Of a stretch of 64,000 nucleotides of DNA, positions 4,638 to 61,587 are shown piece after piece (the stretch's first letter is position 1; each line of letters starts with the position of its first letter). The position numbers and the translations under genes are program-made. Location: the IMG/VR virus record IMGVR_UViG_3300036846_000743, positions 162,074 through 226,073 of that record. The stretch is one strand, 5' to 3'. The notes beneath the pieces are model-generated. The model was given only the letters and a program-made list of their open reading frames with translations, was not told where the DNA came from and made no database searches.

Positions 4638-5636
4638 TTACTTCTTGTGTTCCGGCGGCTTATGTTCCGGCGGCCGATGCGTTTCGGGTGACCTGGCATG
4701 GTGCTCGGCCGGCTTGGCATGGTGCTCGGCCGGCTTGGCATGGTGCTCGGCCGGCTTGGCATGGTGCTCGGCCGGCTTGGCGTGATGTTCCGCCTGCTTG
4801 GCCGCCGCCTCCTTCTTTTCGGCCTCGCCTTCGGTCTGGAGCCTGGGCGGCTCGACGAACGAACCATCGGGATGGACCGTGCCCTGGGCTGGCACGCTGC
4901 CGAAGCTGGCCCGCCGGGGCAGCCCAAACGCCCCGGTGATGCCGCCACCAGCACTGGGCGGAGTCACAGGCGCGCCGGCCGAGCCGCCAGGTGCTTCCGG
5001 CTGGAAATGGCCATCCGGCGTCCTGGCCGACACGGTACGCATTGTCTTGGGCGCCATCTTGGCCTGTTCGAGCGCCGTGACGACGCGCGAGCCCCGCGGG
5101 GTCACAACCGGGGTGACTGCGCGCACAACCGGCACGCCGCCGGCGATGCCCGTGCCGCTGTGGGTCGGGACCGTCATGTTCGCCATGGCTCGCAGCCGGG
5201 GATCGGCCTTGGCGATCTCATCCTCGTCCATCTCGGCCAGTATATTCATGACTTCGACGCGGGCACGTAGCCGGTCACGGTAGCCAATCTGGTTCTGCCG
5301 GTAGCCATCACCGCCGACGGTATAGGCCGTGCTGTAGCCGCCGCCTCGCTGCCCCTTGGTGGCAACCTGTGGTACTCCGACGTTGCGCAGCTTGGGACGG
5401 TTGGGATAGCGGCGGCCGCTGCGTCCCACGATCGCATCGGGATAACCGTCGCGATCGTAGTCGATCATGACCGGGCTGACCGCCCTGGCGCCGCGCTCGA
5501 CCCGGGCATCGAAGCTCTCGATAGGTCCGCCGCCAGCAGCAGCATCACCATTCTCGATCGCCTCCTTGCGGCGAGCCTTTTCTTCGGGCGTCAGCTGACG
5601 ATGACCTTTGTGCGCTGTCTCGTGTGCTTTGGCCAT
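4638..5636 (-). CDS. low-complexity protein with a DxDxDG motif and His-rich C-terminal repeats
   Basis: AAGGAG RBS; DYDRDGYPD; AEHHAKP repeats followed by PPEHK repeats. Confidence 0.75.
   Translation of the reverse strand: MAKAHETAHKGHRQLTPEEKARRKEAIENGDAAAGGGPIESFDARVERGARAVSPVMIDYDRDGYPDAIVGRSGRRYPNRPKLRNVGVPQVATKGQRGGGYSTAYTVGGDGYRQNQIGYRDRLRARVEVMNILAEMDEDEIAKADPRLRAMANMTVPTHSGTGIAGGVPVVRAVTPVVTPRGSRVVTALEQAKMAPKTMRTVSARTPDGHFQPEAPGGSAGAPVTPPSAGGGITGAFGLPRRASFGSVPAQGTVHPDGSFVEPPRLQTEGEAEKKEAAAKQAEHHAKPAEHHAKPAEHHAKPAEHHAKPAEHHARSPETHRPPEHKPPEHKK
4694..4798. repeat. 21-bp coding tandem repeat (4 perfect copies + 1 degenerate)
   Basis: tggcatggtgctcggccggct at 4694, 4715, 4736 and 4757; variant at 4778; encodes AEHHAKP on the minus strand. 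Confidence 0.95.
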
Positions 5637-46874: not shown

Positions 46875-47627
46875 TCAATCCGTGTCGATCGATCGAACGC
46901 GTTGTGCTTCTGCCAGCGTATAGGTGTCTTCCGGCGGAGGAATACCTTCCTCGATCGGCGTATCTTCCAGGCCCTGCTGCGGGGAGCTTTCCTGGATGCC
47001 ATCCTTCATGAAAAGGGCCATGATGCCAATGACTACGTCATTGGCACCAGTGTCGCGGCATGTAACCACGTACTCACCGTCATCGAGCTTGCCTGAGAGC
47101 CGCGTGCTGTAAAAAAAGCCCGATGGCTTGCCCGGCGTAGCTGTGGGCATACCCGCACGCGGGGCGACCGGCAAGACCGAAAACTTCTTGCTGGCAAAGT
47201 CGTAGAAAAAGTTGTCTTTAACCCTCCGGATCGAGTAGATCAGGACGGTCTTCCTGTAAAACCAGAACACGATGTCCACGCCGCGCCTCCCGAGTGGGCC
47301 TTCCCAGGGCGGCTGTGAAAAGGCTTTGACGCCCGGATCGGACTGGAAGCCCATGACCTGAAGCGCCGTCTTCACGTCCTGCTTCGTAATGCCACCGCAT
47401 ACCGTTTGATCGTGCGTACCGGGCAAAGGAAAGTCCACGCCAACAGTATGTGACGGGACTTCCCCGAAAACTTCAGTCTTCCATTGGTGCACCGACATGT
47501 GGTCCTTGATCTGGCCCACGTACGGCGCAATCGCGTCCACGAACGAGCGGTCGCCGGTCAGCTCCGCAAGGAGCTGACCGGGCTTGGGCACGATGATGCG
47601 CTTCTCATCACTTTCCGAGGTACTCAT
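46875..47627 (-). CDS. hypothetical protein ending in a variant tag (RVRSIDTD)
   Basis: 250 aa; overlaps the polymerase stop region. Confidence 0.7.
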   Translation of the reverse strand: MSTSESDEKRIIVPKPGQLLAELTGDRSFVDAIAPYVGQIKDHMSVHQWKTEVFGEVPSHTVGVDFPLPGTHDQTVCGGITKQDVKTALQVMGFQSDPGVKAFSQPPWEGPLGRRGVDIVFWFYRKTVLIYSIRRVKDNFFYDFASKKFSVLPVAPRAGMPTATPGKPSGFFYSTRLSGKLDDGEYVVTCRDTGANDVVIGIMALFMKDGIQESSPQQGLEDTPIEEGIPPPEDTYTLAEAQRVRSIDTD

Positions 47628-50600
47628 CCGGGATCCCCAAGGACCGACCGCGCTCCGGATCGATCGCCTGTCCCCAATTCAGGAAAACCGAGCAATCGAC
47701 CTTGAAGTGATAGGGCTTCTCCAAGCAACGCCCGCCGCGCCCGGCAGCCTCCATCTTCTTCTTGTCGTCAAAGCGGATGCCATCAAGCGTTCGTGGCATG
47801 ATCTCCACGTCATCAGACAGCGCCAAGACGACCGCTTCGCGAACCTCCTCGATATGCGGAATTTTCACCTCCAGCATAACAGCGTCATGGATCTGGAGCA
47901 CGGTCCGGAACTTGTTGCGGAACCCGTTTATCCGGAGCTGGCGCAGGTTATACATGCCCAGCAAGATAGCGTCTGCCACCAGGTTCTGGATCGGATAGTT
48001 CTTGGCCGATCGGCCCTGGTCAGCCTGGGCTGACTTATCGTCAACCCTGCCGAACCGCCGCATCCGACCGAATGCTCCGACCAGATATGGCGTCCTGCTG
48101 CCAGGCCGCGCTTCGCATTCGGCCAGGAACGAACTGGCGGCCGGATAACGCTTGTAGTAGTTATCGATCAGCCGCTGACACTCCTGTACTGAAACATCAG
48201 CACCCTCTTCGCGGCACTGTCGCGACAGTGCCTCGGCACTACGCCCGTAAGGAACGCCGAACCTCACGTTCTTCGCAGCCACGCGCAGCCCAGGCTTGCC
48301 CAGGGCCTTGAGCGCCTTCTTGTTCGGGTCGCAGCTCAGCTTAAACGCCTCGACGGCTGTCGAAGAATGAAGATCCAGGAAGTCCGGATCATCCTCCGGA
48401 AGCATGGCCCGATTGACGTCCTCGATCATCTTCTCATCCCCGGACTCCCAGGCCAGGGCGGCAATCTCGGCCGCGATGATGTCGAACTCCATGAGCACCG
48501 TGGGCACATCGTCCCATTCACCGGCCGTCACGATCGACCGGATCGGGTTCTTGTAGAGAGGCGCACCCAGGATCTTGGTGTAGTCACCAATCACCTCGCC
48601 GTCTTCCACGTGTCCGAGGATGCGCGCGTAGTCATCCTCGCGGCGCTTGGCCAGGTTCTGGAGATTGGGGCCCGAACTCGAGCAACGACCCGTCTCAACG
48701 GGGTAGAACCGGCTGCGCACCCGGCTGTCCCGCGTATTGACGTAGCTCAGGAAGCCGCCGTCGAACTCGTCCGCCTCGTCGAAGACCACACTGCCGTTGG
48801 CTTCGGCACCCATGGCCTCGCCGATCTTGGGTGGACGAAGTACCGACTGGAGCACCTGGCGGATGTAACGGATGTCCCGCAGCTTCTTGACCCGATCATC
48901 CGTGTGGGCAAAGATCCCCAGAACTTCCTTGTCCACGGCCGGCACGAGCAATTGCTTATCCCTCGGGTTAAGGGTACCCCACGATCTCGACGGCTTACCC
49001 GTAGTCTTGATCGGCACCTTGCCGAGTTTCATCTCGGGATCGGGCATTTGCGGCCGGTTCTTGCCGGTTTTCTTGTCAATGACACGACTGAACTCCTCGC
49101 CGAAAAGCCACGCGCGCACCTGTGCCGGCGAGTTGGGATTGAATGATGGCCAGTTCAATTCCTCGCGGAGCGACGTGGTCAGCCGTTCCTTGACCAGCTC
49201 GAAGACCTTGATCAGCTCCTTGCCGCGATCGACATCGACTGTCACGCCGGTCTCTTCCATCTCCAGGAAGGTGAGCCCGGCCAGCATCGTTCGCCAGTAT
49301 GGTTCCCGTGAACTCTTGTGCCAGACATCCTGATCCAGGAATCCGTCACCATCGTTCAGGGTCCGGGCGAAGTTGAACCTCCAGAACAACCGAAGCGTCG
49401 CGTCGGCGTCATAGAGTGCGTAGGGCACAAGCACGTTATCGGGGATATCACCATATCCGCCCAGGTCCCGGAGTTTGATCCCCATTTCCTTGGCAATCCG
49501 GACCTTGGCTTCCTCCACATCGACGCTCCAGCGCGGGATCGTCGTCCAGCGCATGGCCAGCTGCTCCAGATCGAAGCTCTCCGTAGCCTCGAAGACTGCA
49601 TGCGTCATGTAGCCGGTGTCGAAGCCGCCCGTGTAACGGGTCATCTCCCATGGTTCGTGCGGCTCCACGAGCTGGTTACGGTCAACAAGGTCTCGCGATA
49701 CCAGTACTGGTGCCCGTTTCTCGGCCTCGGCATTCGCATCCTCCTCGATCTGGAACTTGGCAATCTTCTTGCGGTATGCAACACCATTGATCCGCTTCGG
49801 CAGTCGTTCCCTCCTCTGCTCCTCGGTCTCGCCTTTCGGCCCTGGTTCCTGCGGCGACGGGACCGTCCAGAGCGGAGCGAAGTCAATCCCCAGAAACTCG
49901 CGGATCCAGGGAATGTCCGCTTTGAAGAAGTGACCGCCGTGGCGGGTCTTGATGTGGATCTCGCCGTTGCTATGTCGGCCATCGATCAGGCGCCGAAGCT
50001 CGCGAGCGATCAACTCGGTGGTAGGACGCCCGAGGCCACCTCCTTGATCCGACAGGCCAACACAGGTGGCCTTCATGGGAGCCCTCCTGTAGTTGCCCCC
50101 GACAGAGAACTGGATGGTTCGCAGGTACGACCCAGGATCGCCAGGATGGCGGCCATGCCATTCCGCGTCCCAGGCGATCGGCAGGTCACCGTCGATCTCG
50201 GAGTCCCATTCACGACTGGCCTTCTCAAGGATATTGTCTATCACCCTGGCCAGATGCTTCGGCGTGTAGCAGACCGAATGATCCCTCGTGCTCTCGATAT
50301 CCTGCGGCCGCTCGCCCTTGATCAGCTCGGTGAGCTGCCTGAGTCCTGATAGCAGATCGGGATACGCCTCCTGCATGCGGAAGATGTAAGCCGGGTGCGG
50401 CATGCCTATGATCTGGACCGTCTGCTCGCCGTAAGAGCCCAGATCATCGAAAGCTGCGTGGGTCTCGGCATCGAACGGCGGGAAGTTGTACTTCATTTCG
50501 ACGACCCGGCCAGTCATGTTGCCGACGGTGAAACCCTTACCCAGGACCGCCCTGATTGCCTCGGTGCCGAGACAGGCGATGAACTTGGGTCGGACCAGGA

Positions 50601-51258
50601 GGATCTCCTGCCAGAGCAGCGGCGCGCAGTTCTTGAGCCACGCCTGCTGCATGGTCCCCGACGTGGGGTCCAGCCTGTTGAACTTCACGGTGTTGGTGAC
50701 ATACCAGTTGCTCCGGGCCTCCAGCGAGACTCCAAGCTCGCGAAGCGCACGGTGCAGTGGTTCGGACGACTGGCCGATAAAATTCTGCTCAAAGGTAAGC
50801 TCCTCAGCACCTGGATGCTTACCGATGATCATGACGTCGGAGTGATAACGCGGGCCGGCAGCTTTCCTGTATTCGACCCATTCGTAGTCCTGGCTGTTTA
50901 CCGAGCTGTTCCTCGAGTTGAAGAACGGCGGCAATGACCAGCGCCCACCCCGCAGGAATGTGGCGTTGACGAACTGGCCCTTGAAGCTGACCTGAAGTTG
51001 CCACTTGCGCTTGTAGAGCGCATTGCGGTAGAGATGTTCCAGGCCGATCATGGCCGGATCGTCGCGCGCCATCTTGGCCGAGACCTTGGATTCGGTCAGC
51101 TGGAGTACGGTCCTGGCAAAGTCAGGACCAGCCGCCGGAATGAGCGGATGGTCCATTGGCACCAGATGCTTCCATGCGTAGCGAGCCCAGCGTTGCTCGC
51201 GGGACAAATTCTTGACGTCGTCGAAAGTGGTGGAATCATCGTCTTTGGTCGTGGTCAT
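47608..51258 (-). CDS. family A DNA polymerase with N-terminal family-4 UDG-like domain and 3'-5' exonuclease
   Basis: UDG-like GKHPG..E...NFIG, TNTVKF, HPAY; exo DAEW, KADI, YALYD; pol TGRCSS..PNLQN, D....E, R..AK...FG..YG, NYPIQ, IHD; start after AGGGAG. Confidence 0.92.
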   Translation of the reverse strand: MTTTKDDDSTTFDDVKNLSREQRWARYAWKHLVPMDHPLIPAAGPDFARTVLQLTESKVSAKMARDDPAMIGLEHLYRNALYKRKWQLQVSFKGQFVNATFLRGGRWSLPPFFNSRNSSVNSQDYEWVEYRKAAGPRYHSDVMIIGKHPGAEELTFEQNFIGQSSEPLHRALRELGVSLEARSNWYVTNTVKFNRLDPTSGTMQQAWLKNCAPLLWQEILLVRPKFIACLGTEAIRAVLGKGFTVGNMTGRVVEMKYNFPPFDAETHAAFDDLGSYGEQTVQIIGMPHPAYIFRMQEAYPDLLSGLRQLTELIKGERPQDIESTRDHSVCYTPKHLARVIDNILEKASREWDSEIDGDLPIAWDAEWHGRHPGDPGSYLRTIQFSVGGNYRRAPMKATCVGLSDQGGGLGRPTTELIARELRRLIDGRHSNGEIHIKTRHGGHFFKADIPWIREFLGIDFAPLWTVPSPQEPGPKGETEEQRRERLPKRINGVAYRKKIAKFQIEEDANAEAEKRAPVLVSRDLVDRNQLVEPHEPWEMTRYTGGFDTGYMTHAVFEATESFDLEQLAMRWTTIPRWSVDVEEAKVRIAKEMGIKLRDLGGYGDIPDNVLVPYALYDADATLRLFWRFNFARTLNDGDGFLDQDVWHKSSREPYWRTMLAGLTFLEMEETGVTVDVDRGKELIKVFELVKERLTTSLREELNWPSFNPNSPAQVRAWLFGEEFSRVIDKKTGKNRPQMPDPEMKLGKVPIKTTGKPSRSWGTLNPRDKQLLVPAVDKEVLGIFAHTDDRVKKLRDIRYIRQVLQSVLRPPKIGEAMGAEANGSVVFDEADEFDGGFLSYVNTRDSRVRSRFYPVETGRCSSSGPNLQNLAKRREDDYARILGHVEDGEVIGDYTKILGAPLYKNPIRSIVTAGEWDDVPTVLMEFDIIAAEIAALAWESGDEKMIEDVNRAMLPEDDPDFLDLHSSTAVEAFKLSCDPNKKALKALGKPGLRVAAKNVRFGVPYGRSAEALSRQCREEGADVSVQECQRLIDNYYKRYPAASSFLAECEARPGSRTPYLVGAFGRMRRFGRVDDKSAQADQGRSAKNYPIQNLVADAILLGMYNLRQLRINGFRNKFRTVLQIHDAVMLEVKIPHIEEVREAVVLALSDDVEIMPRTLDGIRFDDKKKMEAAGRGGRCLEKPYHFKVDCSVFLNWGQAIDPERGRSLGIPDEYLGK

Positions 51259-51310
51259 CGCAGTCTCCCTTGTCAGCCAATGATAGGCATGCGCGGGAAA
51301 GGGATCGAAG

Positions 51311-52438
51311 TCAGGCAAAGCTGGCGATGTCGATCCCCTTCGCATCGCCAGCGGCGTAGATCAGGTTCCAGATCGTTTCATAGTCGAAATTCCCAGGGTC
51401 TTTCCCGTGGGGTAAGTGGACTCGCACGGCTGCCCCACCGGTCTTGGCATAACTGTTCCCCAGGCTGGTGAAAGCCAGAGCCAGCCGCCGCTGTTCTTTG
51501 TAGTCTTGATCGGCGTCAGGATCAAGCATGAGCACCAGGCAACGGGGCTCGCTGCTGTAAGCTGTCAGGCTCGCAAGCCTGAACATCTGGTGCGCCGTGA
51601 TTGACTTGCCCAGCAGCGCCACCGCAGCGTCGCCGACGGTCCAGACGCCGGTCACGCCTTCGACCACAACGATGATCCGGCCCTGGGATGCTCGATCCCA
51701 ATTGTAGAGGATCCTGCGCTTCTTCATGCCCGGCAGGTTGTAATACTTCCGGACCCCACAGGCGCTCCAGTTCAGTTCGCCGATGTAACGGGCCTGCCAG
51801 CCGACCAGCTGGTGTTCCATCTCGATGGGGACCACGAGCCGGCCCTGGACCTGGGAAAACTCGAATGCCTTGCGGCAATAACACAGGCCATACTTGCGGC
51901 CCAGCTTGGCCGCGTCGTAGCCGCGATCCTCGATGTATCGGACCGCCTGGTGATCGAACGACAACTCATCCAGACGAATAACCCGGCCTGGCATCTCGAC
52001 CGCGACGAGCGGCCCTTCATCGCTCCGGTTACCCGGCCGTGTTGCCAGCAGAAGGTTCCGCTCCCCGGCGCTCATCTCGGCACGGAACAACCGGATCTCA
52101 AGATCCTGTCGGTTCTCGACAGCCCGGCGATCACGACCTGACAGGCAACCCTCGTTGTAGCAGTTGACCAGCCAGTTGATCGTGCGACCATCATCGTCCA
52201 GCGAGCCGTAGCAATAATGGAACCAGAGCCGCTGACGGCTATCGCCGCAGTAAGGGCAGTTGACCCTGTAATACTCGCCCGACTGGATGATGTCCCACTC
52301 CATTCGCTTTTCGACGGAGTTCCAGTGTCGGCTGGCAATGACGACCTCCTCGCCTTCGTTGGCGATGGTGATCTCGCCGAACGCGCGGCGAAGCAATTCG
52401 TAAAGGCCAGGACAAAGCGGGCCGGTGAACTGCATCAT
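51311..52438 (-). CDS. DNA primase (Zn finger + TOPRIM)
   Basis: CPYCGD...CYNEGC, VVVEG and LMLDPD. Confidence 0.85.
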   Translation of the reverse strand: MMQFTGPLCPGLYELLRRAFGEITIANEGEEVVIASRHWNSVEKRMEWDIIQSGEYYRVNCPYCGDSRQRLWFHYCYGSLDDDGRTINWLVNCYNEGCLSGRDRRAVENRQDLEIRLFRAEMSAGERNLLLATRPGNRSDEGPLVAVEMPGRVIRLDELSFDHQAVRYIEDRGYDAAKLGRKYGLCYCRKAFEFSQVQGRLVVPIEMEHQLVGWQARYIGELNWSACGVRKYYNLPGMKKRRILYNWDRASQGRIIVVVEGVTGVWTVGDAAVALLGKSITAHQMFRLASLTAYSSEPRCLVLMLDPDADQDYKEQRRLALAFTSLGNSYAKTGGAAVRVHLPHGKDPGNFDYETIWNLIYAAGDAKGIDIASFA

Positions 52439-52441
52439 GAC

Positions 52442-52675
52442 CTACCCTCCCAGCGCCCGAAACGTGAACACGTTGCCGAGCTTGGTCCAGATCTTGATCA
52501 CGCCGTCTTTCCAACTCACCCGCTTACGTGTCAACACGACAGACTCAGCTCCGGTGGGGTGATACCACTCTCTGCCGTGAACAAGATTCAGCTTCCCGGT
52601 TGTACCAACAAGATCGCCGAATTCCTCCTGGTTGCCCGTGACCGAGATCAGCTTCACACTGACGAGTTCCATCAT
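52442..52675 (-). CDS. small hypothetical protein
   Basis: 77 aa between helicase and primase. Confidence 0.6.
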   Translation of the reverse strand: MMELVSVKLISVTGNQEEFGDLVGTTGKLNLVHGREWYHPTGAESVVLTRKRVSWKDGVIKIWTKLGNVFTFRALGG

Positions 52676-54354
52676 TCATCCCCTTCTGTGCCCGCGTATG
52701 GCTTCCACGGGGCGATCGGTGGGGCAGTCATGCCCGCCGGGACCGGCTCACCGTGGATCTCATTGTAGAGATGCGACTGGACAATCCGCTTGGTAACAAT
52801 CTTGTAATTGTTGCTCGCGTCCATCGTGCGACCGTAGCCGCCATCAAGCGATACCAGAGTGTCCATTCCCTGGTTCTCGCTGCGCCGCCCCTTGGTGTAG
52901 AAGACGCGGCAGCACCCGGTCGAACCATCCTTGACGCCAAAGACGAGGCAGTTGACCAGGTTCTCGGCGAAGTCGCGGGCCTCACCCGCATGAGCATGGT
53001 TCAGCGGGGCCGTCGGCGAGCGCGTATTGGCCTCGCCAGAAAGCTGCTGAAGCAACCACACGGTACAGCCGAATCGCTCGGCCAGCTCCATCTTGGCCAC
53101 CATCGGCGTCTCGTTGATCAGATGCCGCAGGGCTCGGTCCGGGTCCTTGTCCTGGGCCTTCAGGTACCGACGGCACATGATCTTGGTGTAGTCGACAATG
53201 ATCGTATCGATCGCCCAGCCGTACTGCTGTTGCTGCCGCTCGATGTACGAGGCCAGCTCGGGAACCCAGCCTACGCCGCGGCCATCCTTGCGCATGTCCA
53301 TCATCTGCAAATTCTGGCCGATCTGCGCATCGGCCTTGAGCAACCGCTCGTACTCGCCGTCCATCAACTCGGGATCAGCAATCTGCTGCATCTCATACCA
53401 CGTCAGCTCGTAGGGGCGCAGGTGGCCCTTGCGGCTGAGCTGATCCAGCGACTTGAGGCCCTCCAGCGTCGCTTTCCTGATGTGCGCAGCGCACGACATG
53501 ATGCGCGGCCGAATATCGCGATCGATGTCTTCCTCGTAAGACGCGAAGATGATCTGCCGGAGCCGTTCGTGGCCGGCATCGCCGTGGACGTGCCAGGCCA
53601 TACACAGCTTGGCTCGCTCCACGGCAGCTTGTACCGCGAACATGGTTTTGCCGCCGCCGAATGGCCCCAGGATCCCGTTCACGTCACCAGGAGCTTGACC
53701 ACCCATCAGGTTGTCTGCCCACTGGATCCCGATCGGTGTCGTATCGATCGTGGTCGGCACCCAGCCCGCAGGAAGCATGGTCTGAAATGGATTGCTGCCG
53801 ATCGCCTGGACGGCCCGGTCCTTGAGAGTGATCTTGTTCAGATAAGCGCCGAAGCCCATTACATTGCGGCCGCTAGCACTGTCGATCACGCGGCGGACCT
53901 TGTCCTGGATCTGCCGCTCCTGGAGGAACTTCCTCAAGAGCGTGAGGCCATACGGCACGCTCAAGTCATTCTCATTGACTCCCATGTACGCATGATAGAG
54001 AAGCCCGTTATACGGGTCGGCATCGTCGGGTCGACCGACAATATCGTTGATCAGGAACTGCGACTGCCGCAGAATCGCATCATCATCCAGAATGCGCTTG
54101 ACCTCGGTGTGGACCGCCACGTAAGGGATCCCACCGATCGTGTATAGCTTGGAGTCCCCCAGCTGGAAGAAGCCGTCGATCAAGATCCGATAATGCCGCT
54201 CAGAATTCGCATCCCAGTCGTCAATCTCGACGTGCTGACGAGCCTCGGCGTAGACTGCGGGCACCCGGATGATATGGATGAGCAACTCCTCCAACTCGGC
54301 CGGAGTCATGCGTGGCTCATCCTGTACCCCGCCACTCCCGAATTTCCCTGCCAT
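52672..54354 (-). CDS. DnaB-like (SF4) replicative helicase
   Basis: GPFGGGKT, SYEE, IIVDY, LQQLS and KGR. Confidence 0.85.
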   Translation of the reverse strand: MAGKFGSGGVQDEPRMTPAELEELLIHIIRVPAVYAEARQHVEIDDWDANSERHYRILIDGFFQLGDSKLYTIGGIPYVAVHTEVKRILDDDAILRQSQFLINDIVGRPDDADPYNGLLYHAYMGVNENDLSVPYGLTLLRKFLQERQIQDKVRRVIDSASGRNVMGFGAYLNKITLKDRAVQAIGSNPFQTMLPAGWVPTTIDTTPIGIQWADNLMGGQAPGDVNGILGPFGGGKTMFAVQAAVERAKLCMAWHVHGDAGHERLRQIIFASYEEDIDRDIRPRIMSCAAHIRKATLEGLKSLDQLSRKGHLRPYELTWYEMQQIADPELMDGEYERLLKADAQIGQNLQMMDMRKDGRGVGWVPELASYIERQQQQYGWAIDTIIVDYTKIMCRRYLKAQDKDPDRALRHLINETPMVAKMELAERFGCTVWLLQQLSGEANTRSPTAPLNHAHAGEARDFAENLVNCLVFGVKDGSTGCCRVFYTKGRRSENQGMDTLVSLDGGYGRTMDASNNYKIVTKRIVQSHLYNEIHGEPVPAGMTAPPIAPWKPYAGTEGDE

Positions 54355-55046
54355 CAGAGCACCTCACTGTAGAAATGGTCGGCCGCCTTGCGCAACTCAT
54401 CTGGAATACGATCGCCCCAGGTAGCGTCGTACGCCTCACGGTCGAAGACATACATCCGGAATGCCTCCTGTTTGAACCGCTCAGCTACATCATCAGCGCC
54501 ACCGATCGTTCCCACGCAGTAGCGGTAGAGCGGTGACAGTTCGTTGGTTGGATCGTTCAAGGCACGGCGCGCCGCAGCCTCGACGTCCATCTTGTCGTAG
54601 AGTTGGTGGACCGTGGTCGCAGCCTTGAACCGATGATCCTCCATCTTGAGGTTCTCGCTATAGACGGTGTACGCGTCTGCGAGCATCCGCGCACGCCGCA
54701 GCGACAGCGCATTGGCAAACTGGTTGGGAAAAGGCGGTGTCGGGCTCTTCCACTCCCGGAATGTACCCCGGACCAGCAGGATCGGGCTGATCGAGTTGGA
54801 GAGCGCGTAGCGGACGATGTCGAACCAGACGGGCTTGTCGTAGACCTTGCCCTGTCCATCGCGACCACCGTCCCAGCGAGGTATAGGCTGAGATCCATAC
54901 GTGCACGGCCCGCCACCTTGCTTGGTCTCGACATGCCGACGGTACTCGAGGATGTAGTAAGTTCGTACCGTGTTGGCCATGTCATAGAGATCATGGCCGT
55001 TGTCGACCCTGTGGTTGCTGCGCGTTGGCATCGCCAAGAGCCTCAA
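54354..55046 (-). CDS. hypothetical protein
   Basis: About 230 aa; translationally coupled to the helicase. Confidence 0.65.
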   Translation of the reverse strand: MRLLAMPTRSNHRVDNGHDLYDMANTVRTYYILEYRRHVETKQGGGPCTYGSQPIPRWDGGRDGQGKVYDKPVWFDIVRYALSNSISPILLVRGTFREWKSPTPPFPNQFANALSLRRARMLADAYTVYSENLKMEDHRFKAATTVHQLYDKMDVEAAARRALNDPTNELSPLYRYCVGTIGGADDVAERFKQEAFRMYVFDREAYDATWGDRIPDELRKAADHFYSEVL

Positions 55047-56587
55047 GTGAAAAACATCCGTGCAACGCCTGAACTGGAGAATGTGCCAGCTGGCTCGATC
55101 TGCACCCAGGCGTGCTTCTTGTAAACACGGCGTCGTGCCATGGCCTGCTTGTAAAACTGCTCGTCAAACTCGTCATTGAAGTCATAGACGACACCGTATT
55201 CCTTTCCGGACTCATCGTGAATACGCGAGACGCGAGACGGTCCCTGAGTCGCATCGATGGGCGAGGAACCCCCGCCAGCCCAGATCAGGGCCGCCAGGGC
55301 GTCGAATGACACACCCAAACGCCAGACGCCGGTAGCAATGGCGCCCCGGATCTTGCCTGCTTCGAAGTCCTCGCGGAGTTGCTTGCGAACAGCAACCGTC
55401 AATGGCGTGTAGTTAACCGGCAGCAACCCGTACTTGCGGTAGTAGCCCTCATCGGCCTCGTCGATGTTGCCGTAGCAGAGCGCGAAGTCAGGCATGAGCC
55501 TGGCCAGGTGCAGCAAATGTTCAATCTTATCGACCAGCACTAAGATCTGGTCGCCTTCTTCGTAGTGCTTTTGAGCGATCTTAGCGATATGCGCATTCCG
55601 GACCTTATTCGTCCAGATGCCATGCCGTTTCCTCGCTGTATCGCCCTGTAGCCCCTTCGTCGGGTTGCCACCCATTTCCACCCGCTGCCAGCGTACCTCG
55701 ATCGGTACGACCAGCTTGAGGCCAACAGCCTCGGGGTAGGTCAGCTTAAACAGAGTCCCGCCGAAGACCGCTTCCATGCGGGCATCTGCGTTATCGGATC
55801 GTCCCTCGACGGTGGCCGTGAAGCCAAAGCGAATGGCCTGGGGGGTCGTCGTGACGATATCGGCAACGTAGGTCTCGGCGAGCAGCTCGTGAACCTCGTC
55901 GCCAAGGAACAGATCCGCAGTCCCAGCGTAATTCCCCACCGACGCAGCCGTAGCCACAGTCACGCGGGCTTGCTTGGCCCGCCCGGCTCCGCGCTGGCCG
56001 ATCGACGGCTGCGGCAGATAGCGGAGCAGCACGCGGATTGTCTTCTGCACGTTGTCAGTCGACTTCACGCAGATCAGGATCTGGGCCGTAGGTAGAAGCA
56101 TTGCCAGGGCGGCGAATAGCTCAGTCTTGCCGAAACCAGCGGCAGCATCGATCACGCCGCCGCGACGAGCCTTGTAGGCCGCCTCGATGGTCCGCAGGGC
56201 TTCTTCCTGGCGGGGCCGGAACTGGAATGACCCCAGGTTGTCCCAGTGCCACTCCAGCTGCTGAGGAAACTGGGGGGAGTCATCAACATAGCAGATCTGA
56301 TAACCCTGGCTGGCGAGTATCTTCTGTACCCGGTCATAATAACCAGCCGGGAAGTTAAGGCAGCCGTAGTCATCGATGCTGAACAGCTTGCGCTGCTCGG
56401 TCTTGATCCGCTGACCGGAAGACTTACCGAACGCTTCACGGCCGTACAGCCGCGTCACGTGCCGGTACTGCATGTAGTAGGTCAGCTCGGAATAGACGTC
56501 GATCGGCAGTGGCTCGTCGAGCCGGCTAGCCAGGTAGAGCGCATTACCGTTTCGGACCAGTAACGCTTTGAGTGGCGAAGTGATCAT
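55043..56587 (-). CDS. superfamily 2 helicase (UvsW/XPB-like)
   Basis: RPRQ, AAAGFGKT, DEVH, GFTAT and Q...RVSR. Confidence 0.9.
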   Translation of the reverse strand: MITSPLKALLVRNGNALYLASRLDEPLPIDVYSELTYYMQYRHVTRLYGREAFGKSSGQRIKTEQRKLFSIDDYGCLNFPAGYYDRVQKILASQGYQICYVDDSPQFPQQLEWHWDNLGSFQFRPRQEEALRTIEAAYKARRGGVIDAAAGFGKTELFAALAMLLPTAQILICVKSTDNVQKTIRVLLRYLPQPSIGQRGAGRAKQARVTVATAASVGNYAGTADLFLGDEVHELLAETYVADIVTTTPQAIRFGFTATVEGRSDNADARMEAVFGGTLFKLTYPEAVGLKLVVPIEVRWQRVEMGGNPTKGLQGDTARKRHGIWTNKVRNAHIAKIAQKHYEEGDQILVLVDKIEHLLHLARLMPDFALCYGNIDEADEGYYRKYGLLPVNYTPLTVAVRKQLREDFEAGKIRGAIATGVWRLGVSFDALAALIWAGGGSSPIDATQGPSRVSRIHDESGKEYGVVYDFNDEFDEQFYKQAMARRRVYKKHAWVQIEPAGTFSSSGVARMFFT

Positions 56588-56692
56588 TGTTCCCCTTCCG
56601 CAGTCACAAACTGCGCAAAGGGGCTTGTCAGGGCTATTTGCGCCCTGTACACTTCCTTTGGCATGTGAGGAGCCCTGGTTTTGGGATCAAGT
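56588..56692 (-). other. 105-nt structured intergenic segment
   Basis: Hairpins at 56592-56623 (contains the helicase RBS GAAGGGG) and 56629-56647. Confidence 0.5.
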
Positions 56693-57235
56693 TCACGCGA
56701 GCCCGTCGGGTGGCCCCCCGGCGGGCTCGCTGCTTTTCAGCACGTCGCTCTGCGGGATGGCCCTCCCCGCTGGATGAACCGACACGACAGTAAACCGGCC
56801 GTATTCGCCCGGTTTATAGGGCGAAATACCCCGGAACTTGCCAGCCACTTCCATCAACGCTACGAACGTATTGACTGTGAGATCGACCGGTAGAACACAA
56901 TCTATGCCGACAACCCGCCCAGGCAGGAACGCCTCGTGCTGGGCATACCTGGGCCGGGCGTTCTCAGGCCGGTTAGGTTCTTGGATATACCGCTGCCAAA
57001 GCCGCGGGCTGCCGTCAATAGCCGGTGACCATTCGATCTTCTTGACGGTGGCAATCGGGATATTCTTGATCCTGGCGGCATGGGTCACTATAGCTCGCCA
57101 CCAGGTCTGATGGAACAGCACTTGGCCGTCAGGGGTCCGTGGGAAGCAAAATACAGTTCCCAACCCTTCACGGGGGCGCTTATCTGCACCCAAGCAAGGC
57201 AAAATAAAACGAAGCAGGACCTTGACCTCTTGCAC
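56693..57235 (-). CDS. stand-alone RAMP (Cas7/Csm3-like) protein
   Basis: VKVLLRFILPCLG; FPRTPDGQVLF...WRAIV..AA; HEAFLPG..V.I; C-terminal Gly loop AGKFRGISPYKPGEYGRFTV; AGGAGG RBS. Confidence 0.6.
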   Translation of the reverse strand: MQEVKVLLRFILPCLGADKRPREGLGTVFCFPRTPDGQVLFHQTWWRAIVTHAARIKNIPIATVKKIEWSPAIDGSPRLWQRYIQEPNRPENARPRYAQHEAFLPGRVVGIDCVLPVDLTVNTFVALMEVAGKFRGISPYKPGEYGRFTVVSVHPAGRAIPQSDVLKSSEPAGGPPDGLA

Positions 57236-57254: not shown

Positions 57255-57283
57255 GCACGGCGTTACGCTGCGTAACGCCGTGC
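57255..57283. repeat. perfect 14-bp inverted repeat with a 1-nt centre
   Basis: gcacggcgttacgc-t-gcgtaacgccgtgc between the IS110/Nop-like and RAMP-like genes. Confidence 0.95.
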
Positions 57284-57286
57284 CGG

Positions 57287-58312
57287 TCATTTCCCGCCCG
57301 CGACAACATCGCGATGCCGCACATAAGCAGCTGCTTCTGCGCGATCCACAAAGAAATGGTCTGGCGCGAACAAGCCTTCCTGGCGAGGACGCTTGCCCGG
57401 CGCTGCGGGCTTACCTTCGACCCGATCGCAGTAAAGCGCATCGAGCCACACCAGCCGCAGATAGTCCACGAACATCTGACTGGCTCGAAGAGCACCCTTT
57501 ACAGGGCCTTCTTCTCGCCGGTAGCGGCGCCAGAGAAAACAGCCTGGATGATCACGATGCTGGATCGGCGGTGGGCCAAGACCAAACCAGGTATCGAACA
57601 CCAGGCGGCACCGCGCCGTCCCGTCAGACTCCTTGTAGAACCCGAGCACGCTGGCCATCGTTCGCGGATCAAGGCCCAGATAAGCATGCAGCTTGGCCGC
57701 GTCGTCGTGATAAGAGATGACGTCGCCATCGCGGCGAGGCGCGCGCAGCGACACGTACCAGCGAGGATCAAGTATGACCCCCAGCAGCCGTGCCAACTTA
57801 TCCAGATGAAGATACTTGATGAATGACAGGGCCGGCCACGCCGGATGTTCCTCGAGCATCCGATGGCGAAAGTCGCCCATGCTGAAGTCTTGATCGTAAC
57901 CGGCGGCCGCTGCAATGGCGTATGCCGGATAGTCGGTATCGCCGAATTCGTGCCAGCCTCCCAGGGCCGGGTTCAGCCCGTCAGCAGCCGAATCACGCAT
58001 CCGAACCAGCATGAGCTTCGGATTGTCACGCTCGGCGCGAGTCCGGCCAACAACTGCCGGACTCGCAACTTCCAACCGTAGCAGATCACCGCTCCTCTTG
58101 CGGCCGTGCATCGCACACAGAGCCCGGGCGTTGCCGACGCTACCGACCATCCGGATATGACGGGCGCGCTGACAAGCACCGTCCCCGAGAAAGCTCTCAA
58201 CAGGTGCGTGCGTATTGGTGGCGACGCGACCGCCATCCACATACCACACAAGGCCATCCTGCGCCGTGTGCATCTTGAGAACCTGATCCTCGAGGACTTC
58301 CGGTAAAGACAT
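57287..58312 (-). CDS. IS110/Nop-domain-like (Tas-like) protein, apparently catalytically degenerate
   Basis: HPAWPALSFI.....LARLLGVILDPRWY...AKLHAYLGLDP...GALRASQMFVDYLRLVW; no DEDD tetrad recognisable in the N-terminal domain. Confidence 0.55.
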   Translation of the reverse strand: MSLPEVLEDQVLKMHTAQDGLVWYVDGGRVATNTHAPVESFLGDGACQRARHIRMVGSVGNARALCAMHGRKRSGDLLRLEVASPAVVGRTRAERDNPKLMLVRMRDSAADGLNPALGGWHEFGDTDYPAYAIAAAAGYDQDFSMGDFRHRMLEEHPAWPALSFIKYLHLDKLARLLGVILDPRWYVSLRAPRRDGDVISYHDDAAKLHAYLGLDPRTMASVLGFYKESDGTARCRLVFDTWFGLGPPPIQHRDHPGCFLWRRYRREEGPVKGALRASQMFVDYLRLVWLDALYCDRVEGKPAAPGKRPRQEGLFAPDHFFVDRAEAAAYVRHRDVVAGGK

Positions 58313-58345: not shown

Positions 58346-60478
58346 TCATCCGGCCAGTCGCAGGACACCGTCGAAGAGAACCTCGAAGGATGGCTCGTGC
58401 GTGACGAGCAGGCATTGAATGCCACGACTCTCGGAGAGATCGCGCATCTTGCCGATCGCCACTTCCAGGCATGCAAGGTTCCTCTCGTCAAGCGACTCGG
58501 TCGGTTCATCCAGACACAGCAGCCCAGCCGTGCCTGCGAACAAGGAGTTTACAGCGACACGGAAAGCCAAGGCAAGCAGGACCTTCTGACCTTCACTAAG
58601 ACGCTGCGCGGGCGAAACCGTACCAGCATAGGCCCCACGCAGGAATGTAGTCGTGAAGTTCAGGCCATCACCCAGGCTCACCCGAAAGTCGGCATCGAAC
58701 GACTCCAGCAGCTCGTTGGTGTCGTCCGCCAAGATCTCCAAGTAATTATGCGCCACGATCTTGGGCAGGCGATCGTGGTGCATGACCTTGCGGACCTCGC
58801 TCAGGTGGTAGACCCAGAGACGGTCCATCTCGGCCTTGCGCTCGGCCGCTTCCAGCCGCCCTAGCATATCCTCGTCGGACTTCAGGGCGTCCTTGATGGC
58901 ATGCAGCTCACCTTCGGCCCTGACGACCAGCTGACCGAGCGGCTCGACCTCGCGCAGCGCTTCCCGAGCCTTCTTGACCGCAGCCTCGTCGGGAGCCGTG
59001 CCTAGCGCATCACTGCTCTTGACGTGCTTCAGACTGATCTCGTCCAGCTTGCCGCTGCTCCGGCTCACTTCCTTGCGCAGATGCGTAACCCGGATCTCGG
59101 TCTCGGCGATGGCCCTGTCCATGGTTATCCCGGCATCGATCATCTCGCGACAGGTGTCGGGATCAGCAACAGGAACTTCCCCGTTGCTGGCTGTGAAAGC
59201 CGCCTGGTCAAGAGATAGTGTGATCATGCGCTTGGCATGATCCTGGGACCAGCCTTGCCACCGCGCGTGCTCGCGACTGTAACCGGCGTGTTCCTCCTGG
59301 ACCTGAGTCGCATCCTTGAGCGCCTTCTTCAAGCCAGGCAGTTCAGTCTTGTAGAGCTTAACTTTCTTCAGGATCACATCGGTCTCCGTGCCGCAGGTCG
59401 GACAGACCTTCGGTTCGTCCTTGAACCATTTCAGTAGCTCTTCGCGCGTCCTGATCGAATGCCCCAGCTCATCGATCTTCTCCTTCACCACCTTTTCGCC
59501 CGGATAGCCCTTGGGCTCTTGCGGCTCTGGATGTGCTGTCCGTTCCGTTTTCAGGCCATCTTCTCGGGCCTTGAGCGCTTCTTCCTGCTCCCGCCGTTTC
59601 TTGGCGACTTCCCATTTGGCCAGGGCCTCCTGGGCGGCATTGATGTCCCCGGCGGCGCCCGCTTTGGCCTGTTCGAGTTCAGCCTGCTCCTGCACAGCAG
59701 CCGTCAGCTCTTTCTGCCTGGCCTCCAGGTCGGCTGCCAGCTCATCGACCTGCTCGCCCAGGGAAACGACGACCACGCGATCACGCCGCCACTGTTCGTC
59801 GCGACTGACCAGCGCCTGGGCCGCCGGGACGTCGAGCTTGTTGATCACGGCGTTGTCCTTGGCGATCGCCGCCACCAGCTCATCCCGGCGACCCTGGTTG
59901 CGCGCGACCCGCGCACGCAACGTGTCGATCTCCGGATTGGGCTGTGCCGGGTTGACCCGCTTGATCTCGGCATCCAGGAGTTTGTAGATAACATCGGCGC
60001 GCGCCAGGTCGAACAGCTGGCCGAAGGTCTTGTTGCGCTCGGCTGGCGTCTCGTCGATGAATGCAGCCATGTTCCGCTGCGGGACGAAAATGTACTCGGA
60101 CAGGATACGCTGATCCACTCCGAGTAGATCCAGGACCGCCGCGGTCACGGCGTTGTCGCCGTCGATCGCGTCGCCACTGCCGATCCGGCAAGTACTGACC
60201 CCTCGACGTAGTACGCGGATAATCTCGACCTTGATCCCGTTATGCTCGAAGTTGAGCACGATCCGGGACCGCTCCCGGTTATCTGCCAGCTGGCAGATAT
60301 TCTCGGTCTTAGTCCCCGCGTTGTCGATTGTGCCCAGGATGGCGCCTCGTATCGCCTTAACAACATTGCTCTTGCCAGAGCCATTCGGCCCCACGATGCC
60401 GTTGAGCCCGTGATGCCAGACATGCTTCAAATGCCGATGCTGGCAGAAATTCTCCAGGACAAGCCGTTCCAGCTTCAT
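58346..60478 (-). CDS. SbcC/Rad50-like ATPase
   Basis: GPNGSGKS, coiled coil with CPTC hook, LSEGQ, LDEP and VTH. Confidence 0.92.
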   Translation of the reverse strand: MKLERLVLENFCQHRHLKHVWHHGLNGIVGPNGSGKSNVVKAIRGAILGTIDNAGTKTENICQLADNRERSRIVLNFEHNGIKVEIIRVLRRGVSTCRIGSGDAIDGDNAVTAAVLDLLGVDQRILSEYIFVPQRNMAAFIDETPAERNKTFGQLFDLARADVIYKLLDAEIKRVNPAQPNPEIDTLRARVARNQGRRDELVAAIAKDNAVINKLDVPAAQALVSRDEQWRRDRVVVVSLGEQVDELAADLEARQKELTAAVQEQAELEQAKAGAAGDINAAQEALAKWEVAKKRREQEEALKAREDGLKTERTAHPEPQEPKGYPGEKVVKEKIDELGHSIRTREELLKWFKDEPKVCPTCGTETDVILKKVKLYKTELPGLKKALKDATQVQEEHAGYSREHARWQGWSQDHAKRMITLSLDQAAFTASNGEVPVADPDTCREMIDAGITMDRAIAETEIRVTHLRKEVSRSSGKLDEISLKHVKSSDALGTAPDEAAVKKAREALREVEPLGQLVVRAEGELHAIKDALKSDEDMLGRLEAAERKAEMDRLWVYHLSEVRKVMHHDRLPKIVAHNYLEILADDTNELLESFDADFRVSLGDGLNFTTTFLRGAYAGTVSPAQRLSEGQKVLLALAFRVAVNSLFAGTAGLLCLDEPTESLDERNLACLEVAIGKMRDLSESRGIQCLLVTHEPSFEVLFDGVLRLAG

Positions 60479-61587
60479 ACGCTCTCCTCACTTGATGCTT
60501 CGTAGAACTCATTTCTCATGGCCTCCAGCTCGATCCGCGGATCGGCGACTTCCAGCAGCCGTACCGATGAATCCCGCACTGGGCCGGGCTCGCAAACCAT
60601 GTGAACAGCACCGGCCAGGCCACGATCCGCAACCTGTCGACGAGCTGTAGCCGACGGTGCCCGTTCGTCGCGACGCCGGCTCCGGTGCCGCAGGAACAGA
60701 TGACAGCGATCTTCGAGTGCATTAGCCAGCTTGGCACCAAGGCCCTCGATGTCATCGTAGTAGGCAATATCGATCACGGCCCGCTTGATCCCCTCGCCGT
60801 CCAGGGGCAAGTCACGGCGCGCCAGAAAGGCTTCAGCTTCCTGATGTGTCGTGATCTGGTAGCGGCGAATCGGCCGCGTATCGAGATTGATCGACTCGAC
60901 ACGGAACGGGTTCGCATCGTTATAGATGGCATAGAACCGTTTTGTCTCTTCTTCGGCCACATCGCGGACGTGGGTTGAACCTGGCGAAAGCGCCACGCCC
61001 ATTGACCCATTCAGGGCCTTATAGCTCAGCTCTGTGTGCACGTGATAGTCACCAGCCAGTAAGTGCATCGCGAACGGTAACTGCGCCATCGACAGCTCGG
61101 CCTGGCGCACGTTGCCCATGAATTCGTGCCATACCTGGTGACAGAGCAGGAATGATCCTGACGGGGCCTGGAGGGTAGCATACGTCGCCATGAACTCGGC
61201 AGGCCGCATGTAGTCGAGCCCGTAGATCATGAAGTCGTCCACGTCGTACACCAGACCGTGCAAGTGAACCGGATCTGGATGGATCGAAGGCCAGTCCTGC
61301 CGGCCATCGTGCTGCCCGAGGACATAGACGACCTGTACTTCGTCACCGCTGAGCTTCTCGAACTGATCACGCAGGAACTTGATCGTCTCGGGCCGCGGCG
61401 TCGGCTTGTCCAGGATGTCTCCGCCCAGCGCCAGAATATTCGCTTTGTGTTCGCAGCAGAACCCAACGATCTGCTCGAACGAGTGCTGAGCATCCCCAGT
61501 GATGCCTCGGTACTTCCAGGCGCCGGTTTCGTCGAAATGCAGGTCCGCCGCGAACACGATGGACGGACGGTCGAGCTTGGTCATCAC
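60475..61587 (-). CDS. SbcD/Mre11-like nuclease
   Basis: ADLH, GGDILD, GQHD, CHQ, GDYH and PGS. Confidence 0.9.
   Translation of the reverse strand: MMTKLDRPSIVFAADLHFDETGAWKYRGITGDAQHSFEQIVGFCCEHKANILALGGDILDKPTPRPETIKFLRDQFEKLSGDEVQVVYVLGQHDGRQDWPSIHPDPVHLHGLVYDVDDFMIYGLDYMRPAEFMATYATLQAPSGSFLLCHQVWHEFMGNVRQAELSMAQLPFAMHLLAGDYHVHTELSYKALNGSMGVALSPGSTHVRDVAEEETKRFYAIYNDANPFRVESINLDTRPIRRYQITTHQEAEAFLARRDLPLDGEGIKRAVIDIAYYDDIEGLGAKLANALEDRCHLFLRHRSRRRDERAPSATARRQVADRGLAGAVHMVCEPGPVRDSSVRLLEVADPRIELEAMRNEFYEASSEESV

Follow-up and report, generated by a model that had tools for sequence, protein, structure and literature searches.

A predicted Vipr-like RAMP protein, with no repeat guide RNA detected, in the replication module of an uncultured jumbo phage

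Introduction

What is the role of a RAMP protein in a phage genome that contains neither a CRISPR locus nor a recognizable repeat guide RNA? This question is raised by a gene at positions 56693..57235 of a 64,000-nucleotide stretch of viral DNA (positions 162,074 to 226,073 of IMG/VR record IMGVR_UViG_3300036846_000743), which is referred to here, at its full length, as the window. The window is the final 64 kb of one 226,073-bp viral contig rated complete by CheckV, and the genome is that of an uncultured jumbo phage. An earlier note, prepared from the sequence alone, described the gene product as an orphan Cas7/Csm3-like RAMP that could polymerise on a non-CRISPR RNA of its own or act as an anti-CRISPR. 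In this study, we consider the protein to be a Vipr-like RAMP that would bind single-stranded nucleic acid and assist a neighbouring helicase, a reading to which we assign a probability of roughly 0.45.

VIPR systems were described in 2026 in Escherichia phage SUSP1 and in a P. fulva prophage (bioRxiv 10.64898/2026.04.26.720920,.720927; hereafter the VIPR preprints). They are phage-borne and consist of a minimal RAMP protein (Vipr), an accessory gene (vap) and vrRNAs of approximately 100 nt, each with 9-16 YNNGG repeats and a structured tail. Vipr oligomerises along the vrRNA, with one protomer per repeat (VIPR preprints). The self-polymerising RAMP that the earlier note imagined is essentially this published mechanism, and the 'GGY-NN' patterns that it mentioned point to the VIPR system. 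The idea of a viral RAMP outside CRISPR was therefore right in kind: the protein is predicted to be Vipr-like, is encoded by a phage and has no CRISPR locus.

Gene and protein family

The open reading frame lies at exactly the position given in the earlier note. It is on the minus strand, begins with GTG and encodes 180 aa, and the plus-strand frame of the same interval contains many stops. The peptides quoted from it (LRFILPCLG, PRTPDGQVLF, WRAIVTHAA, HEAFLPGRVVGI and GISPYKPGEYGRFTV) all occur in the translation. The description of this feature as a Vipr-like minimal RAMP gene draws on the reading frame, its homologues, alignments, an AlphaFold model and fold searches. A Shine-Dalgarno sequence, GGAGGA, precedes the GTG codon in the window; of seven relatives examined, six have it too and the seventh (L006) has GGGGGA. 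The genome annotation contains a truncated product of 131 aa (P0013) that starts from an internal codon. Because the conservation of the family begins at residue 1, we consider the upstream GTG, which yields 180 aa, to be the true start, and the Shine-Dalgarno sequence, the homologues and the conservation from the first residue together identify the reading frame as a real gene.

In a set of 5.8 billion proteins, 22 homologues with 43-86% identity were found, some of them on contigs of 226-246 kb. An exhaustive phmmer search returned 172 cluster representatives (50% identity clusters, E <= 1e-3), all metagenomic or viral, and this count is a lower bound, the family comprising at least 172 clusters at that identity. 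Retrieval of loci by pattern yielded one viral and three metagenomic loci, the diversity of the broad alignment being too great for this approach. The proteins are basic, with a median pI of 9.5 and a net charge of approximately +6. Searches of the window protein against Pfam, PHROGs and PADLOC returned nothing even at E <= 1, and the family is a large, phage-restricted one without a name or annotation in any source searched. The phage itself has no close cultured relative, because its PolA is only approximately 26% identical to T5-like polymerases and a tblastn search with the RAMP protein against 50,697 phage genomes gave no match.

Conserved columns and predicted fold

Four RAMP landmarks had been read from the sequence of the single protein, and these proved to be the most conserved columns of the family, above chance: L15/G16; R33/G37/W45/W46; H100/E101/G106; and G132/G136/S138/P139/G146/F148. 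Three glycines (G132, G136 and G146) do not vary at all among 63 diverse members, and F10, L15, G16, R82, H100, E101, G106, P116, S138, P139 and F148 are conserved in at least 90%. The AlphaFold2 model, which was built on 21 homologues (pLDDT 85.6, pTM 0.77), has the order beta1, hairpin, helix 43-57, four strands (68-115), helix 121-134, G-loop and strand 148-155. The landmarks overlap the predicted beta1 (2-10), helix 43-57, strands 96-103 and 108-115, helix 121-134, the G-loop and strand 148-155. Residues 1-157 are modelled as a folded RRM core with a G-rich loop (G132...G146), and residues 158-180 are predicted to be disordered; past strand 148-155 there is only this disordered 23-residue tail and no further domain.

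According to Makarova et al. (2011; PMC3150331), RAMPs have an RRM/ferredoxin-like core, a first strand at the N-terminus and a Gly-rich loop between a helix and a strand. The predicted model and the fold searches give an RRM core with an N-terminal first strand, and the model and the 63-member alignment place a Gly-rich loop between helix 121-134 and strand 148-155. By the description of Makarova et al. (2011), the protein, as modelled, is a single-RRM RAMP of Cas7-group organisation.

The fold searches agree with this assignment. Foldseek against the PDB gave 98 matches at E <= 1e-3, of which the top 50 were all CRISPR RAMPs (TM up to 0.59), the leading types being Cas7-11, type VII Cas7, Csm3/Csm5, Cmr and Csf2. 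In VIA-align, which is independent of Foldseek, the five highest Z-scores (11.8, 11.8, 10.7, 10.4 and 10.2) belonged to type III subunits, including Csm3, and no fold from outside CRISPR ranked above 24th, the place of an RNase P subunit with Z 7.5. A shape search of the ESM Atlas returned the family's own viral clusters first, followed by PF03787 RAMPs (TM 0.64/0.56) and Csm4. Among the viral structures of BFVD there were three significant matches, one of them annotated as a Cas-associated RAMP-superfamily protein. Structure prediction and four fold searches therefore indicate a ferredoxin/RRM-like fold that is specifically RAMP-like, as the earlier note had proposed.

Sequence profiles gave far less. 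PF03787 matched neither the RAMP protein nor the 63 members nor the six-frame translation of the genome, and PDB sequence searches with narrow and broad family profiles returned nothing significant, with one weak, non-significant match to 'SUSP1 Vipr protein'. Among the 18,950 NCBIfam models searched with the 63 members, TIGR03115 cas7_csf2 was the sole family matched by more than one member (2/63, best E 7.7e-4).

Relation to Vipr and to CRISPR RAMPs

The fold libraries searched did not include the Vipr structures. In the AFDB-cluster search, ranks 1, 2, 3, 4 and 11 (E 9.5e-9 to 6.4e-5) were occupied by A0A2D6XG06, A0A1F4YLN4, A0A0F9A1L0, X1U2U4 and A0A661D0E2, which are the five seed entries of the VIPR discovery and rank ahead of all CRISPR RAMPs. 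On the predicted structures, the nearest relatives of the window RAMP are the phage Vipr proteins. The relation is a structural one, and sequence similarity is not significant: HMMER aligns the block of helix 2, G-loop and last strand with the same block of SUSP1 Vipr at E 0.76 ('aGkYrGiSPfkp..yGrFeV' vs 'AGNLCGVGDWRPRFGRFSV'). The motif common to both runs from a helix through G-x3-G-[VI]-x-x-aromatic-[RK]-P...[FY]-G-R-F-x-V to a strand. The two proteins are also of similar size (approximately 180 aa against 202 aa for SUSP1 Vipr), and both are phage-encoded single-RRM RAMPs outside CRISPR. Vipr is adjoined by a DNA-interacting accessory gene (vap1-6), and near the window RAMP the candidates for such a gene are those of a dead-RuvC/Nop-like partner protein and an XPB-like helicase, both described below.

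The two proteins appear to differ in the residues that would read a guide. Vipr recognises GGY through H17, R138, D177, W178 and R179 and also has an alpha-bundle (K33), and D177, which reads G1, is essential (VIPR preprints). In the non-significant HMMER register (E 0.76), D177 falls on the near-invariant P139, W178 on Y/F140 and R179 on the variable K141. The alpha-bundle of Vipr has no counterpart in the model of the window RAMP, which contains only three helices and no bundle. Moreover, VIPR is a small accessory cassette, whereas the window RAMP belongs to a core replication/recombination module and is apparently coupled to a helicase.

With the Cas7-group RAMPs of CRISPR systems, the protein shares the RRM core, the N-terminal first strand, a G-rich loop that separates helix 2 from the last strand, and the lack of anything beyond. 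Type VII Cas7 and Csm3 match it with TM 0.56-0.58, and VIA-align gives Z 10.2 for Csm3 (6ae2_B) and Z 9.0-9.3 for Csf2. Unlike Csm3/Cmr4, type VII Cas7 and Csf2, however, the window RAMP has no CRISPR array, no cas partners and no PF03787 match. The sole candidate for a Csm3-like catalytic Asp is D18, in the loop between beta1 and helix 1, and elsewhere in the family this position is occupied by N, A, V, R, K and others. The hairpin of strands 78-84 and 96-103, which has a variable tip, is a thumb candidate on its predicted secondary structure. Because the Cas5-type Csm4 matches about equally well, the protein cannot be assigned to a specific Cas7 subfamily. Of the label Cas7/Csm3-like, the RAMP fold stands, and Csm3 gives way to the phage Vipr proteins as the nearest relatives.

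Search for a CRISPR locus and a guide RNA

The orphan status of the gene was borne out, since no CRISPR array was found in the window or in the complete 226,073-bp genome, and six-frame Pfam searches of the genome gave no match to RAMP, Cas1, Cas6 or Cas5. Only two interspaced-repeat regions occur in the genome that could be taken for CRISPR-like arrays, and both were rejected as in-frame coding repeats. These are the in-frame tandem repeats at genome positions 96.4-96.9 kb and 139.1-139.7 kb, outside the window, with periods of 42, 45, 78 and 87 bp. Inside the window, a 21-bp unit is repeated in tandem 5.2 times at 4694-4802.

A genome-wide scan for short-period arrays, which the earlier note had proposed, likewise found no array. 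The screen of the VIPR discoverers required at least four YNNGG units or the variants NNNGG, YNNNG and NNNNG (VIPR preprints). At their loosest thresholds, there were 0 tracts of any of the four motifs on either strand of the 226-kb genome, in which a Markov model predicts 1.1 runs of four YNNGG units. Across the genome, nothing was returned by a strict search for GGY or by a search without a set motif for periods of 4, 5 and 7, and the period-6 matches were codon-periodic coding repeats. Seventeen related loci (approximately 205 kb) contained no vrRNA tract, only isolated runs at chance level that lie inside genes at inconsistent positions. In the window, neither Rfam at gathering thresholds nor a tRNA scan gave any match. 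The flanks of the gene differ as well: vipr in VIPR loci is flanked by long intergenic regions that encode RNA (VIPR preprints), whereas the window RAMP has gaps of only 51 nt upstream and 105 nt downstream. Because there is neither a repeat vrRNA tract nor a long intergenic flank, the RAMP is not a canonical VIPR component. It had been suggested that a guide RNA would be non-repetitive or lie outside the window; the genome-wide scan removes a repeat tract outside the window, and a non-repetitive guide, if any guide exists, stays.

The replication/recombination module and the link to the helicase

The RAMP gene is embedded in a conserved order of genes: SbcD, SbcC, (partner), RAMP, SF2 helicase, a gene of approximately 200-230 aa, DnaB-like, primase-like and PolA-UDG. 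This order is kept from 86% to approximately 25% RAMP identity, both in the close and intermediate loci that are long enough and in the distant loci L016 and L017; the exception is L002, where the SbcC and helicase genes were not called. The identity of the RAMP was confirmed by profile, at E <= 1e-60 in the close and intermediate loci. In the window, the gene immediately downstream (55043..56587, minus strand) encodes an XPB/Rad25-like SF2 helicase of 514 aa (Pfam ResIII, E 8.5e-16; PHROG 16; archaeal XPB 2fwr_A, E 8.6e-8), and an SF2 helicase gene directly follows the RAMP gene at 13 of the 14 loci with a readable context.

A profile search identified a distant RAMP subfamily of approximately 150 aa with 23-32% identity. 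At its loci L016 and L017, the partner is absent and the RAMP gene still stands directly before the helicase in the same module; at L010, the most divergent partner locus, no RAMP gene adjoins the partner. These three loci rule out the RAMP and the dead-RuvC/Nop protein as an invariant unit, and since the first two keep the RAMP-helicase pair and the third has the partner without the RAMP, the deepest conserved link is that between the RAMP and the helicase.

The junction between the two genes is conserved in its own way. At L009 and L012, the stop of the RAMP gene and the start of the helicase gene share 4 nt. In all ten close loci, the gap holds a conserved micro-ORF (a minute open reading frame; 56584..56664 in the window, minus strand, 26 aa), which opens with MPKEVYRAQIALTSP (MPKEVYRAQ...), is 23-26 aa long across the close clade and has a stop that overlaps the helicase start (ATGA or GTGA) in each of the ten. 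On this arrangement, the micro-ORF is probably an upstream reading frame for translational coupling, and translation of the RAMP and the helicase appears to be coupled in 12 of 14 loci, even where RAMP identity falls to approximately 25%. On the opposite strand of the micro-ORF block, a sigma-70-like promoter, TTGTCA-17-TACACT, can be read at 56625-56653. An antisense promoter within 56584-56664, for a small RNA ending at the hairpin described next, was entertained and demoted, the block being the helicase-coupled micro-ORF; the T-run after the hairpin is poorly conserved, which also counts against the antisense small RNA.

A hairpin in the gene and a palindrome before it

The last 12 codons of the RAMP gene contain a 14-bp GC-rich hairpin (56697..56730) with a 6-nt loop, GGGCCA on the sense strand of the gene. 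All ten close loci have the hairpin, and its loop is invariant. Its codons encode the predicted-disordered but conserved tail SEPAGGPxDGL, in which identity at third codon positions is 0.89 against 0.54 in the core (permutation p approximately 0.0003), and the single variable third position in the tail covaries across the stem. Formal covariation is modest, with four pairs, a level reached by 29 of 500 shuffles. No other hairpin in the genome has a GGGCCA loop and at least 10 paired positions. Five of the ten loci have an internal mismatch, C.A when read on the sense strand and G.U when read on the antisense; in L003 this pattern is shifted by one position, and the remaining four loci have a standard pair at the site. 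Judging from these substitution patterns, the conserved disordered tail of the RAMP appears to be shaped by a nucleic-acid element.

Between the partner and the RAMP, the 51-nt gap is filled by a perfect 13-bp palindrome (57255..57283) with the core CGTTACGC-N-GCGTAACG; six close relatives keep the core and L003 does not. The palindrome could serve as an operator, as an attenuator or as a site of RNA processing. The hairpin and the palindrome were rejected as universal companions of the RAMP: the distant family members have no gaps, and the two elements are therefore clade-specific. A further perfect stem of 11 bp with an 8-nt loop lies inside the coding sequence of the partner at 58037-58066, so that three strong hairpins occur within 1.4 kb; stems of at least 10 bp occur at approximately 22 sites across the 226-kb genome.

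The partner gene

The partner (57287..58312, minus strand, 341 aa) is assigned by its structure model and fold searches to a degenerate RuvC-like domain followed by a Nop/IS110-Tnp-like helical domain. It is kept in the jumbo clade, with lengths of 299-343 aa across the close and intermediate loci, and is absent from the distant subfamily; its own family comprises at least 70 unannotated phage proteins. In the model (pLDDT 92.5, pTM 0.91), an RNase-H-like domain at the N-terminus is followed by a helical domain at the C-terminus. By Z-score, TasR in complex with tigRNA and DNA ranks first among PDB matches (9mty_B, Z 11.3 over 236 residues). TasH, which matches the helical domain, comes second (Z 8.0), and after it come RuvC/RuvX/YqgF resolvases, which match the N-terminal domain, and the IS110 recombinase ISCro4 (Z 6.6). 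Searches of AFDB gave IS110 clusters (E 8e-3 to 9e-3), those of the ESM Atlas gave a Transposase_20 cluster (TM 0.56/0.50), and language-model features likewise pointed to IS110/Transposase_20. Foldseek matches to the PDB were weak (best E 0.067), and Pfam gave no match to PF01548, PF02371 or PF01798.

The combination of a RuvC-like N-terminus with a Nop/Transposase_20-like helical C-terminus is shared with TasR, IS110 and Nop5. However, no acidic residue is invariant on beta1, beta4 or beta5 of the RuvC-like domain and there is no DEDD tetrad; D19, which is acidic in 75% of members (71% Asp), lies in a variable turn, E81 is conserved in 77%, and R54 and N61 stand at beta4 and the start of helix 2. 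In the C-terminal domain, no serine is conserved in at least 80%, so the serine of the IS110 Tnp domain is not conserved. Since the family conserves none of the catalytic residues, the partner was discarded as a working RuvC resolvase, and likewise as an IS110 recombinase and as a TasR nuclease. From this residue pattern, the RuvC-like domain appears to be catalytically inactive, as it is in Nop5 and in 'dead' TasR repressors. For a guide of the partner, no tandem array and no Rfam match were found, although no search for motifs of the TIGRFinder type was made. The partner also differs from its structural relatives in having neither a recognisable TIGR array nor a bridge-RNA-like leader, its gaps to SbcC and RAMP being 33 nt and 51 nt. 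In the literature searched, no paper connects a RAMP with proteins of the Tas, IS110 or Nop kind.

Discussion

Nucleic-acid binding, a partnership with the helicase and a role in replication are what we infer for the window RAMP. In the manner of other RAMPs, the basic RAMP domain would use helix 1 and the G-loop to bind single-stranded RNA or DNA, and the protein would serve as an accessory subunit of the XPB-like helicase in replication or recombination, with R-loops, primers and recombination intermediates as candidate substrates. It would then be neither a programmable silencer nor an anti-CRISPR. Given that no repeat guide was found and that the gene is located in a replication module, its role is probably unlike that of Vipr.

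Several observations weigh against this proposal. The characterised relatives, Vipr and Cas7, are all guide-RNA proteins, and the architecture of the partner is that of guide-RNA-binding proteins (TasR, IS110, Nop5). The conservation of gene order could reflect common descent and not function. Because some VIPR types carry helicase or nuclease accessories, the RAMP and the helicase could themselves be a VIPR-like pair, and the strongly constrained hairpin that the close clade carries in the gene could be an RNA handle. Moreover, the residue-level comparison with Vipr follows an HMMER register that is not significant (E 0.76).

The strongest alternative is that the RAMP is a divergent VIPR-type RNA-guided DNA binder with a non-repetitive or coding-embedded guide. 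The hairpin at 56697-56730 would be the handle, the partner and/or the helicase would be vaps, and the task of the system would be either to silence rival mobile elements or to control genes of the phage. Vipr proteins are the closest structural relatives, and VIPR types vary in the form of their vrRNA, some having a single vrRNA or helicase or nuclease vaps (VIPR preprints). The hairpin shows signs of selection at the nucleic-acid level with an invariant loop, and the partner has the architecture common to the guide-RNA binders TasR and IS110. Furthermore, TIGR-Tas offers documented cases of guide RNAs that lie within disordered coding regions. However, no period-5 tract of any motif exists genome-wide, and the distant members have no hairpin, palindrome or gaps, their genes abutting or overlapping. 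The Asp by which Vipr reads G1 corresponds, in the non-significant register, to the near-invariant Pro, and the model lacks the alpha-bundle. Finally, VIPR is dispensable on satellite-free hosts (VIPR preprints), whereas the RAMP gene is fixed in a replication module. On balance, we regard a VIPR-type guide system as rather unlikely.

A second alternative takes the hairpin as the substrate. The protein might be a Cas6-like binder or cleaver of hairpin RNA that acts on the 3' stem-loop of its own cistron, and perhaps on others, and thereby processes or stabilises the polycistronic mRNA and sets the expression ratio of the RAMP and the helicase. The stem-loop does stand at the 3' end of the RAMP gene, just before the micro-ORF and the helicase. 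The family is near-invariant at His100 and Ser138, and the close clade conserves Tyr140; His, Ser and Tyr are residue types that serve metal-independent RAMP ribonucleases such as Cas6f. Cas6 structures match the model at Z 5.9-7.8, but Cas7- and Cas5-type RAMPs match it better (Z 10-11.8). The hairpin is unique in the genome and is absent from distant members that keep the protein, and the mismatch at five of ten loci, C.A in the sense and G.U in the antisense, lends no support to an RNA of the sense strand. This alternative therefore seems improbable.

The proposal that a free RAMP acts as a decoy, which sequesters crRNA or vrRNA or poisons the Cas7 filaments of the host as an anti-CRISPR or anti-VIPR, fares worse. 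It would account for an orphan RAMP, with its RAMP RNA-binding elements present, in a phage without cas genes or arrays. Known anti-CRISPR genes, however, are typically small, patchy and located in accessory regions. The window RAMP occupies a fixed position in a core module from 86% to approximately 25% identity, in phages from very different samples. It is apparently coupled translationally to the helicase, has no PADLOC match and does not conserve the GGY-reading Asp (in the non-significant HMMER register). Because of the deep synteny and the helicase coupling, the anti-CRISPR half of the earlier proposal is very unlikely to hold: this is a deeply syntenic replication/recombination gene and not a variable accessory one. 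Equally remote is convergence, in which a generic RRM/ferredoxin-like protein, for example a novel replication protein, has no true homology to RAMPs, as the lack of significant profile matches to PF03787 or PDB RAMP sequences and the moderate TM-scores (0.5-0.64) might suggest; against it, RAMPs top four independent searches (Z 10-11.8 vs 7.5 for RNase P subunits), the RAMP-specific helix/G-loop/strand motif is the best-conserved part of the family and aligns with that of Vipr, and the cas7_csf2 signal is weak but specific.

The preferred reading, a nucleic-acid-binding RAMP that assists the helicase, can be extended in a stronger form, which we offer as a tentative idea only. A Vipr-like RAMP without a guide array may be a built-in subunit of a viral replication/recombination machine together with the XPB-like helicase. 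In jumbo phages, the dead-RuvC/Nop-type protein would join the RAMP and the helicase, and the assembly might act on R-loops or on transcripts that prime or direct replication. If this were true, a RAMP lineage would have a role outside defence and competition, a single locus would for the first time join two RNA-guide-binding folds (RAMP and Nop/IS110/TasR), and the case would bear on the origin of Vipr and CRISPR RAMPs.

Every described VIPR type is defined by a repeat RNA of the GGY/NN type, and VIPR has been proposed as the ancestor of the CRISPR RAMPs (VIPR preprints). Although all described types have such an RNA, the large Vipr-adjacent family reported here (at least 172 clusters) has none that we could detect. 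Either VIPR-like effectors are able to use a quite different, non-repetitive guide, or there is, or once was, a part for RAMPs in the nucleic-acid transactions of viral replication that requires no guide; both outcomes bear on the origin of RNA-guided immunity. Through the partner, RNA-binding folds of the RAMP type are also connected with those of the TIGR/IS110 type, a connection for which we found no precedent in the literature searched.

Neighbouring genes

The remaining genes of the module are likewise on the minus strand of the window. The gene at 58346..60478 encodes an SbcC/Rad50-like ATPase of 710 aa (Pfam SMC_N, AAA_23; PHROG 77), and the gene at 60475..61587 encodes an SbcD/Mre11-like phosphoesterase of 370 aa, a description that draws on synteny and on a Pfam Metallophos match (E 4.1e-5) that scores above the family cut-off. 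Between the helicase and the DnaB-like gene, a conserved protein of 230 aa (54354..55046) is recognized by synteny and has no match in Pfam, PHROG or PADLOC; a gene of approximately 190-245 aa occupies this position in every locus that is long enough. The DnaB-like replicative helicase (52672..54354, 560 aa) matches PHROG 19 (E 1.2e-14) and AAA_25. The gene at 47608..51345 encodes a family-A DNA polymerase with a UDG-superfamily domain (1245 aa; DNA_pol_A, E 1.4e-34; UDG, E 9.9e-20). The UDG-superfamily domain is N-terminal on PolA, and the fusion is found in every related locus that covers the N-terminal part of the polymerase.

Some relatives show local differences in these genes. At L014 (3653-6178), the SF2 helicase is enlarged to 841 aa and has a weak match to LAGLIDADG_3, as in an intein or a homing-endonuclease insertion. 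At L002 (10649-12208), only an 87-aa gene is called at the helicase site, followed by 1.3 kb without a called gene, and the helicase is possibly disrupted or frameshifted there. Upstream of SbcD, four loci carry a small CsrA-family gene on the opposite strand (L002, 4820-4981; L003, 5031-5267; L009, 4115-4330; L012, 2521-2784), a homologue of the RNA-binding global regulator type.

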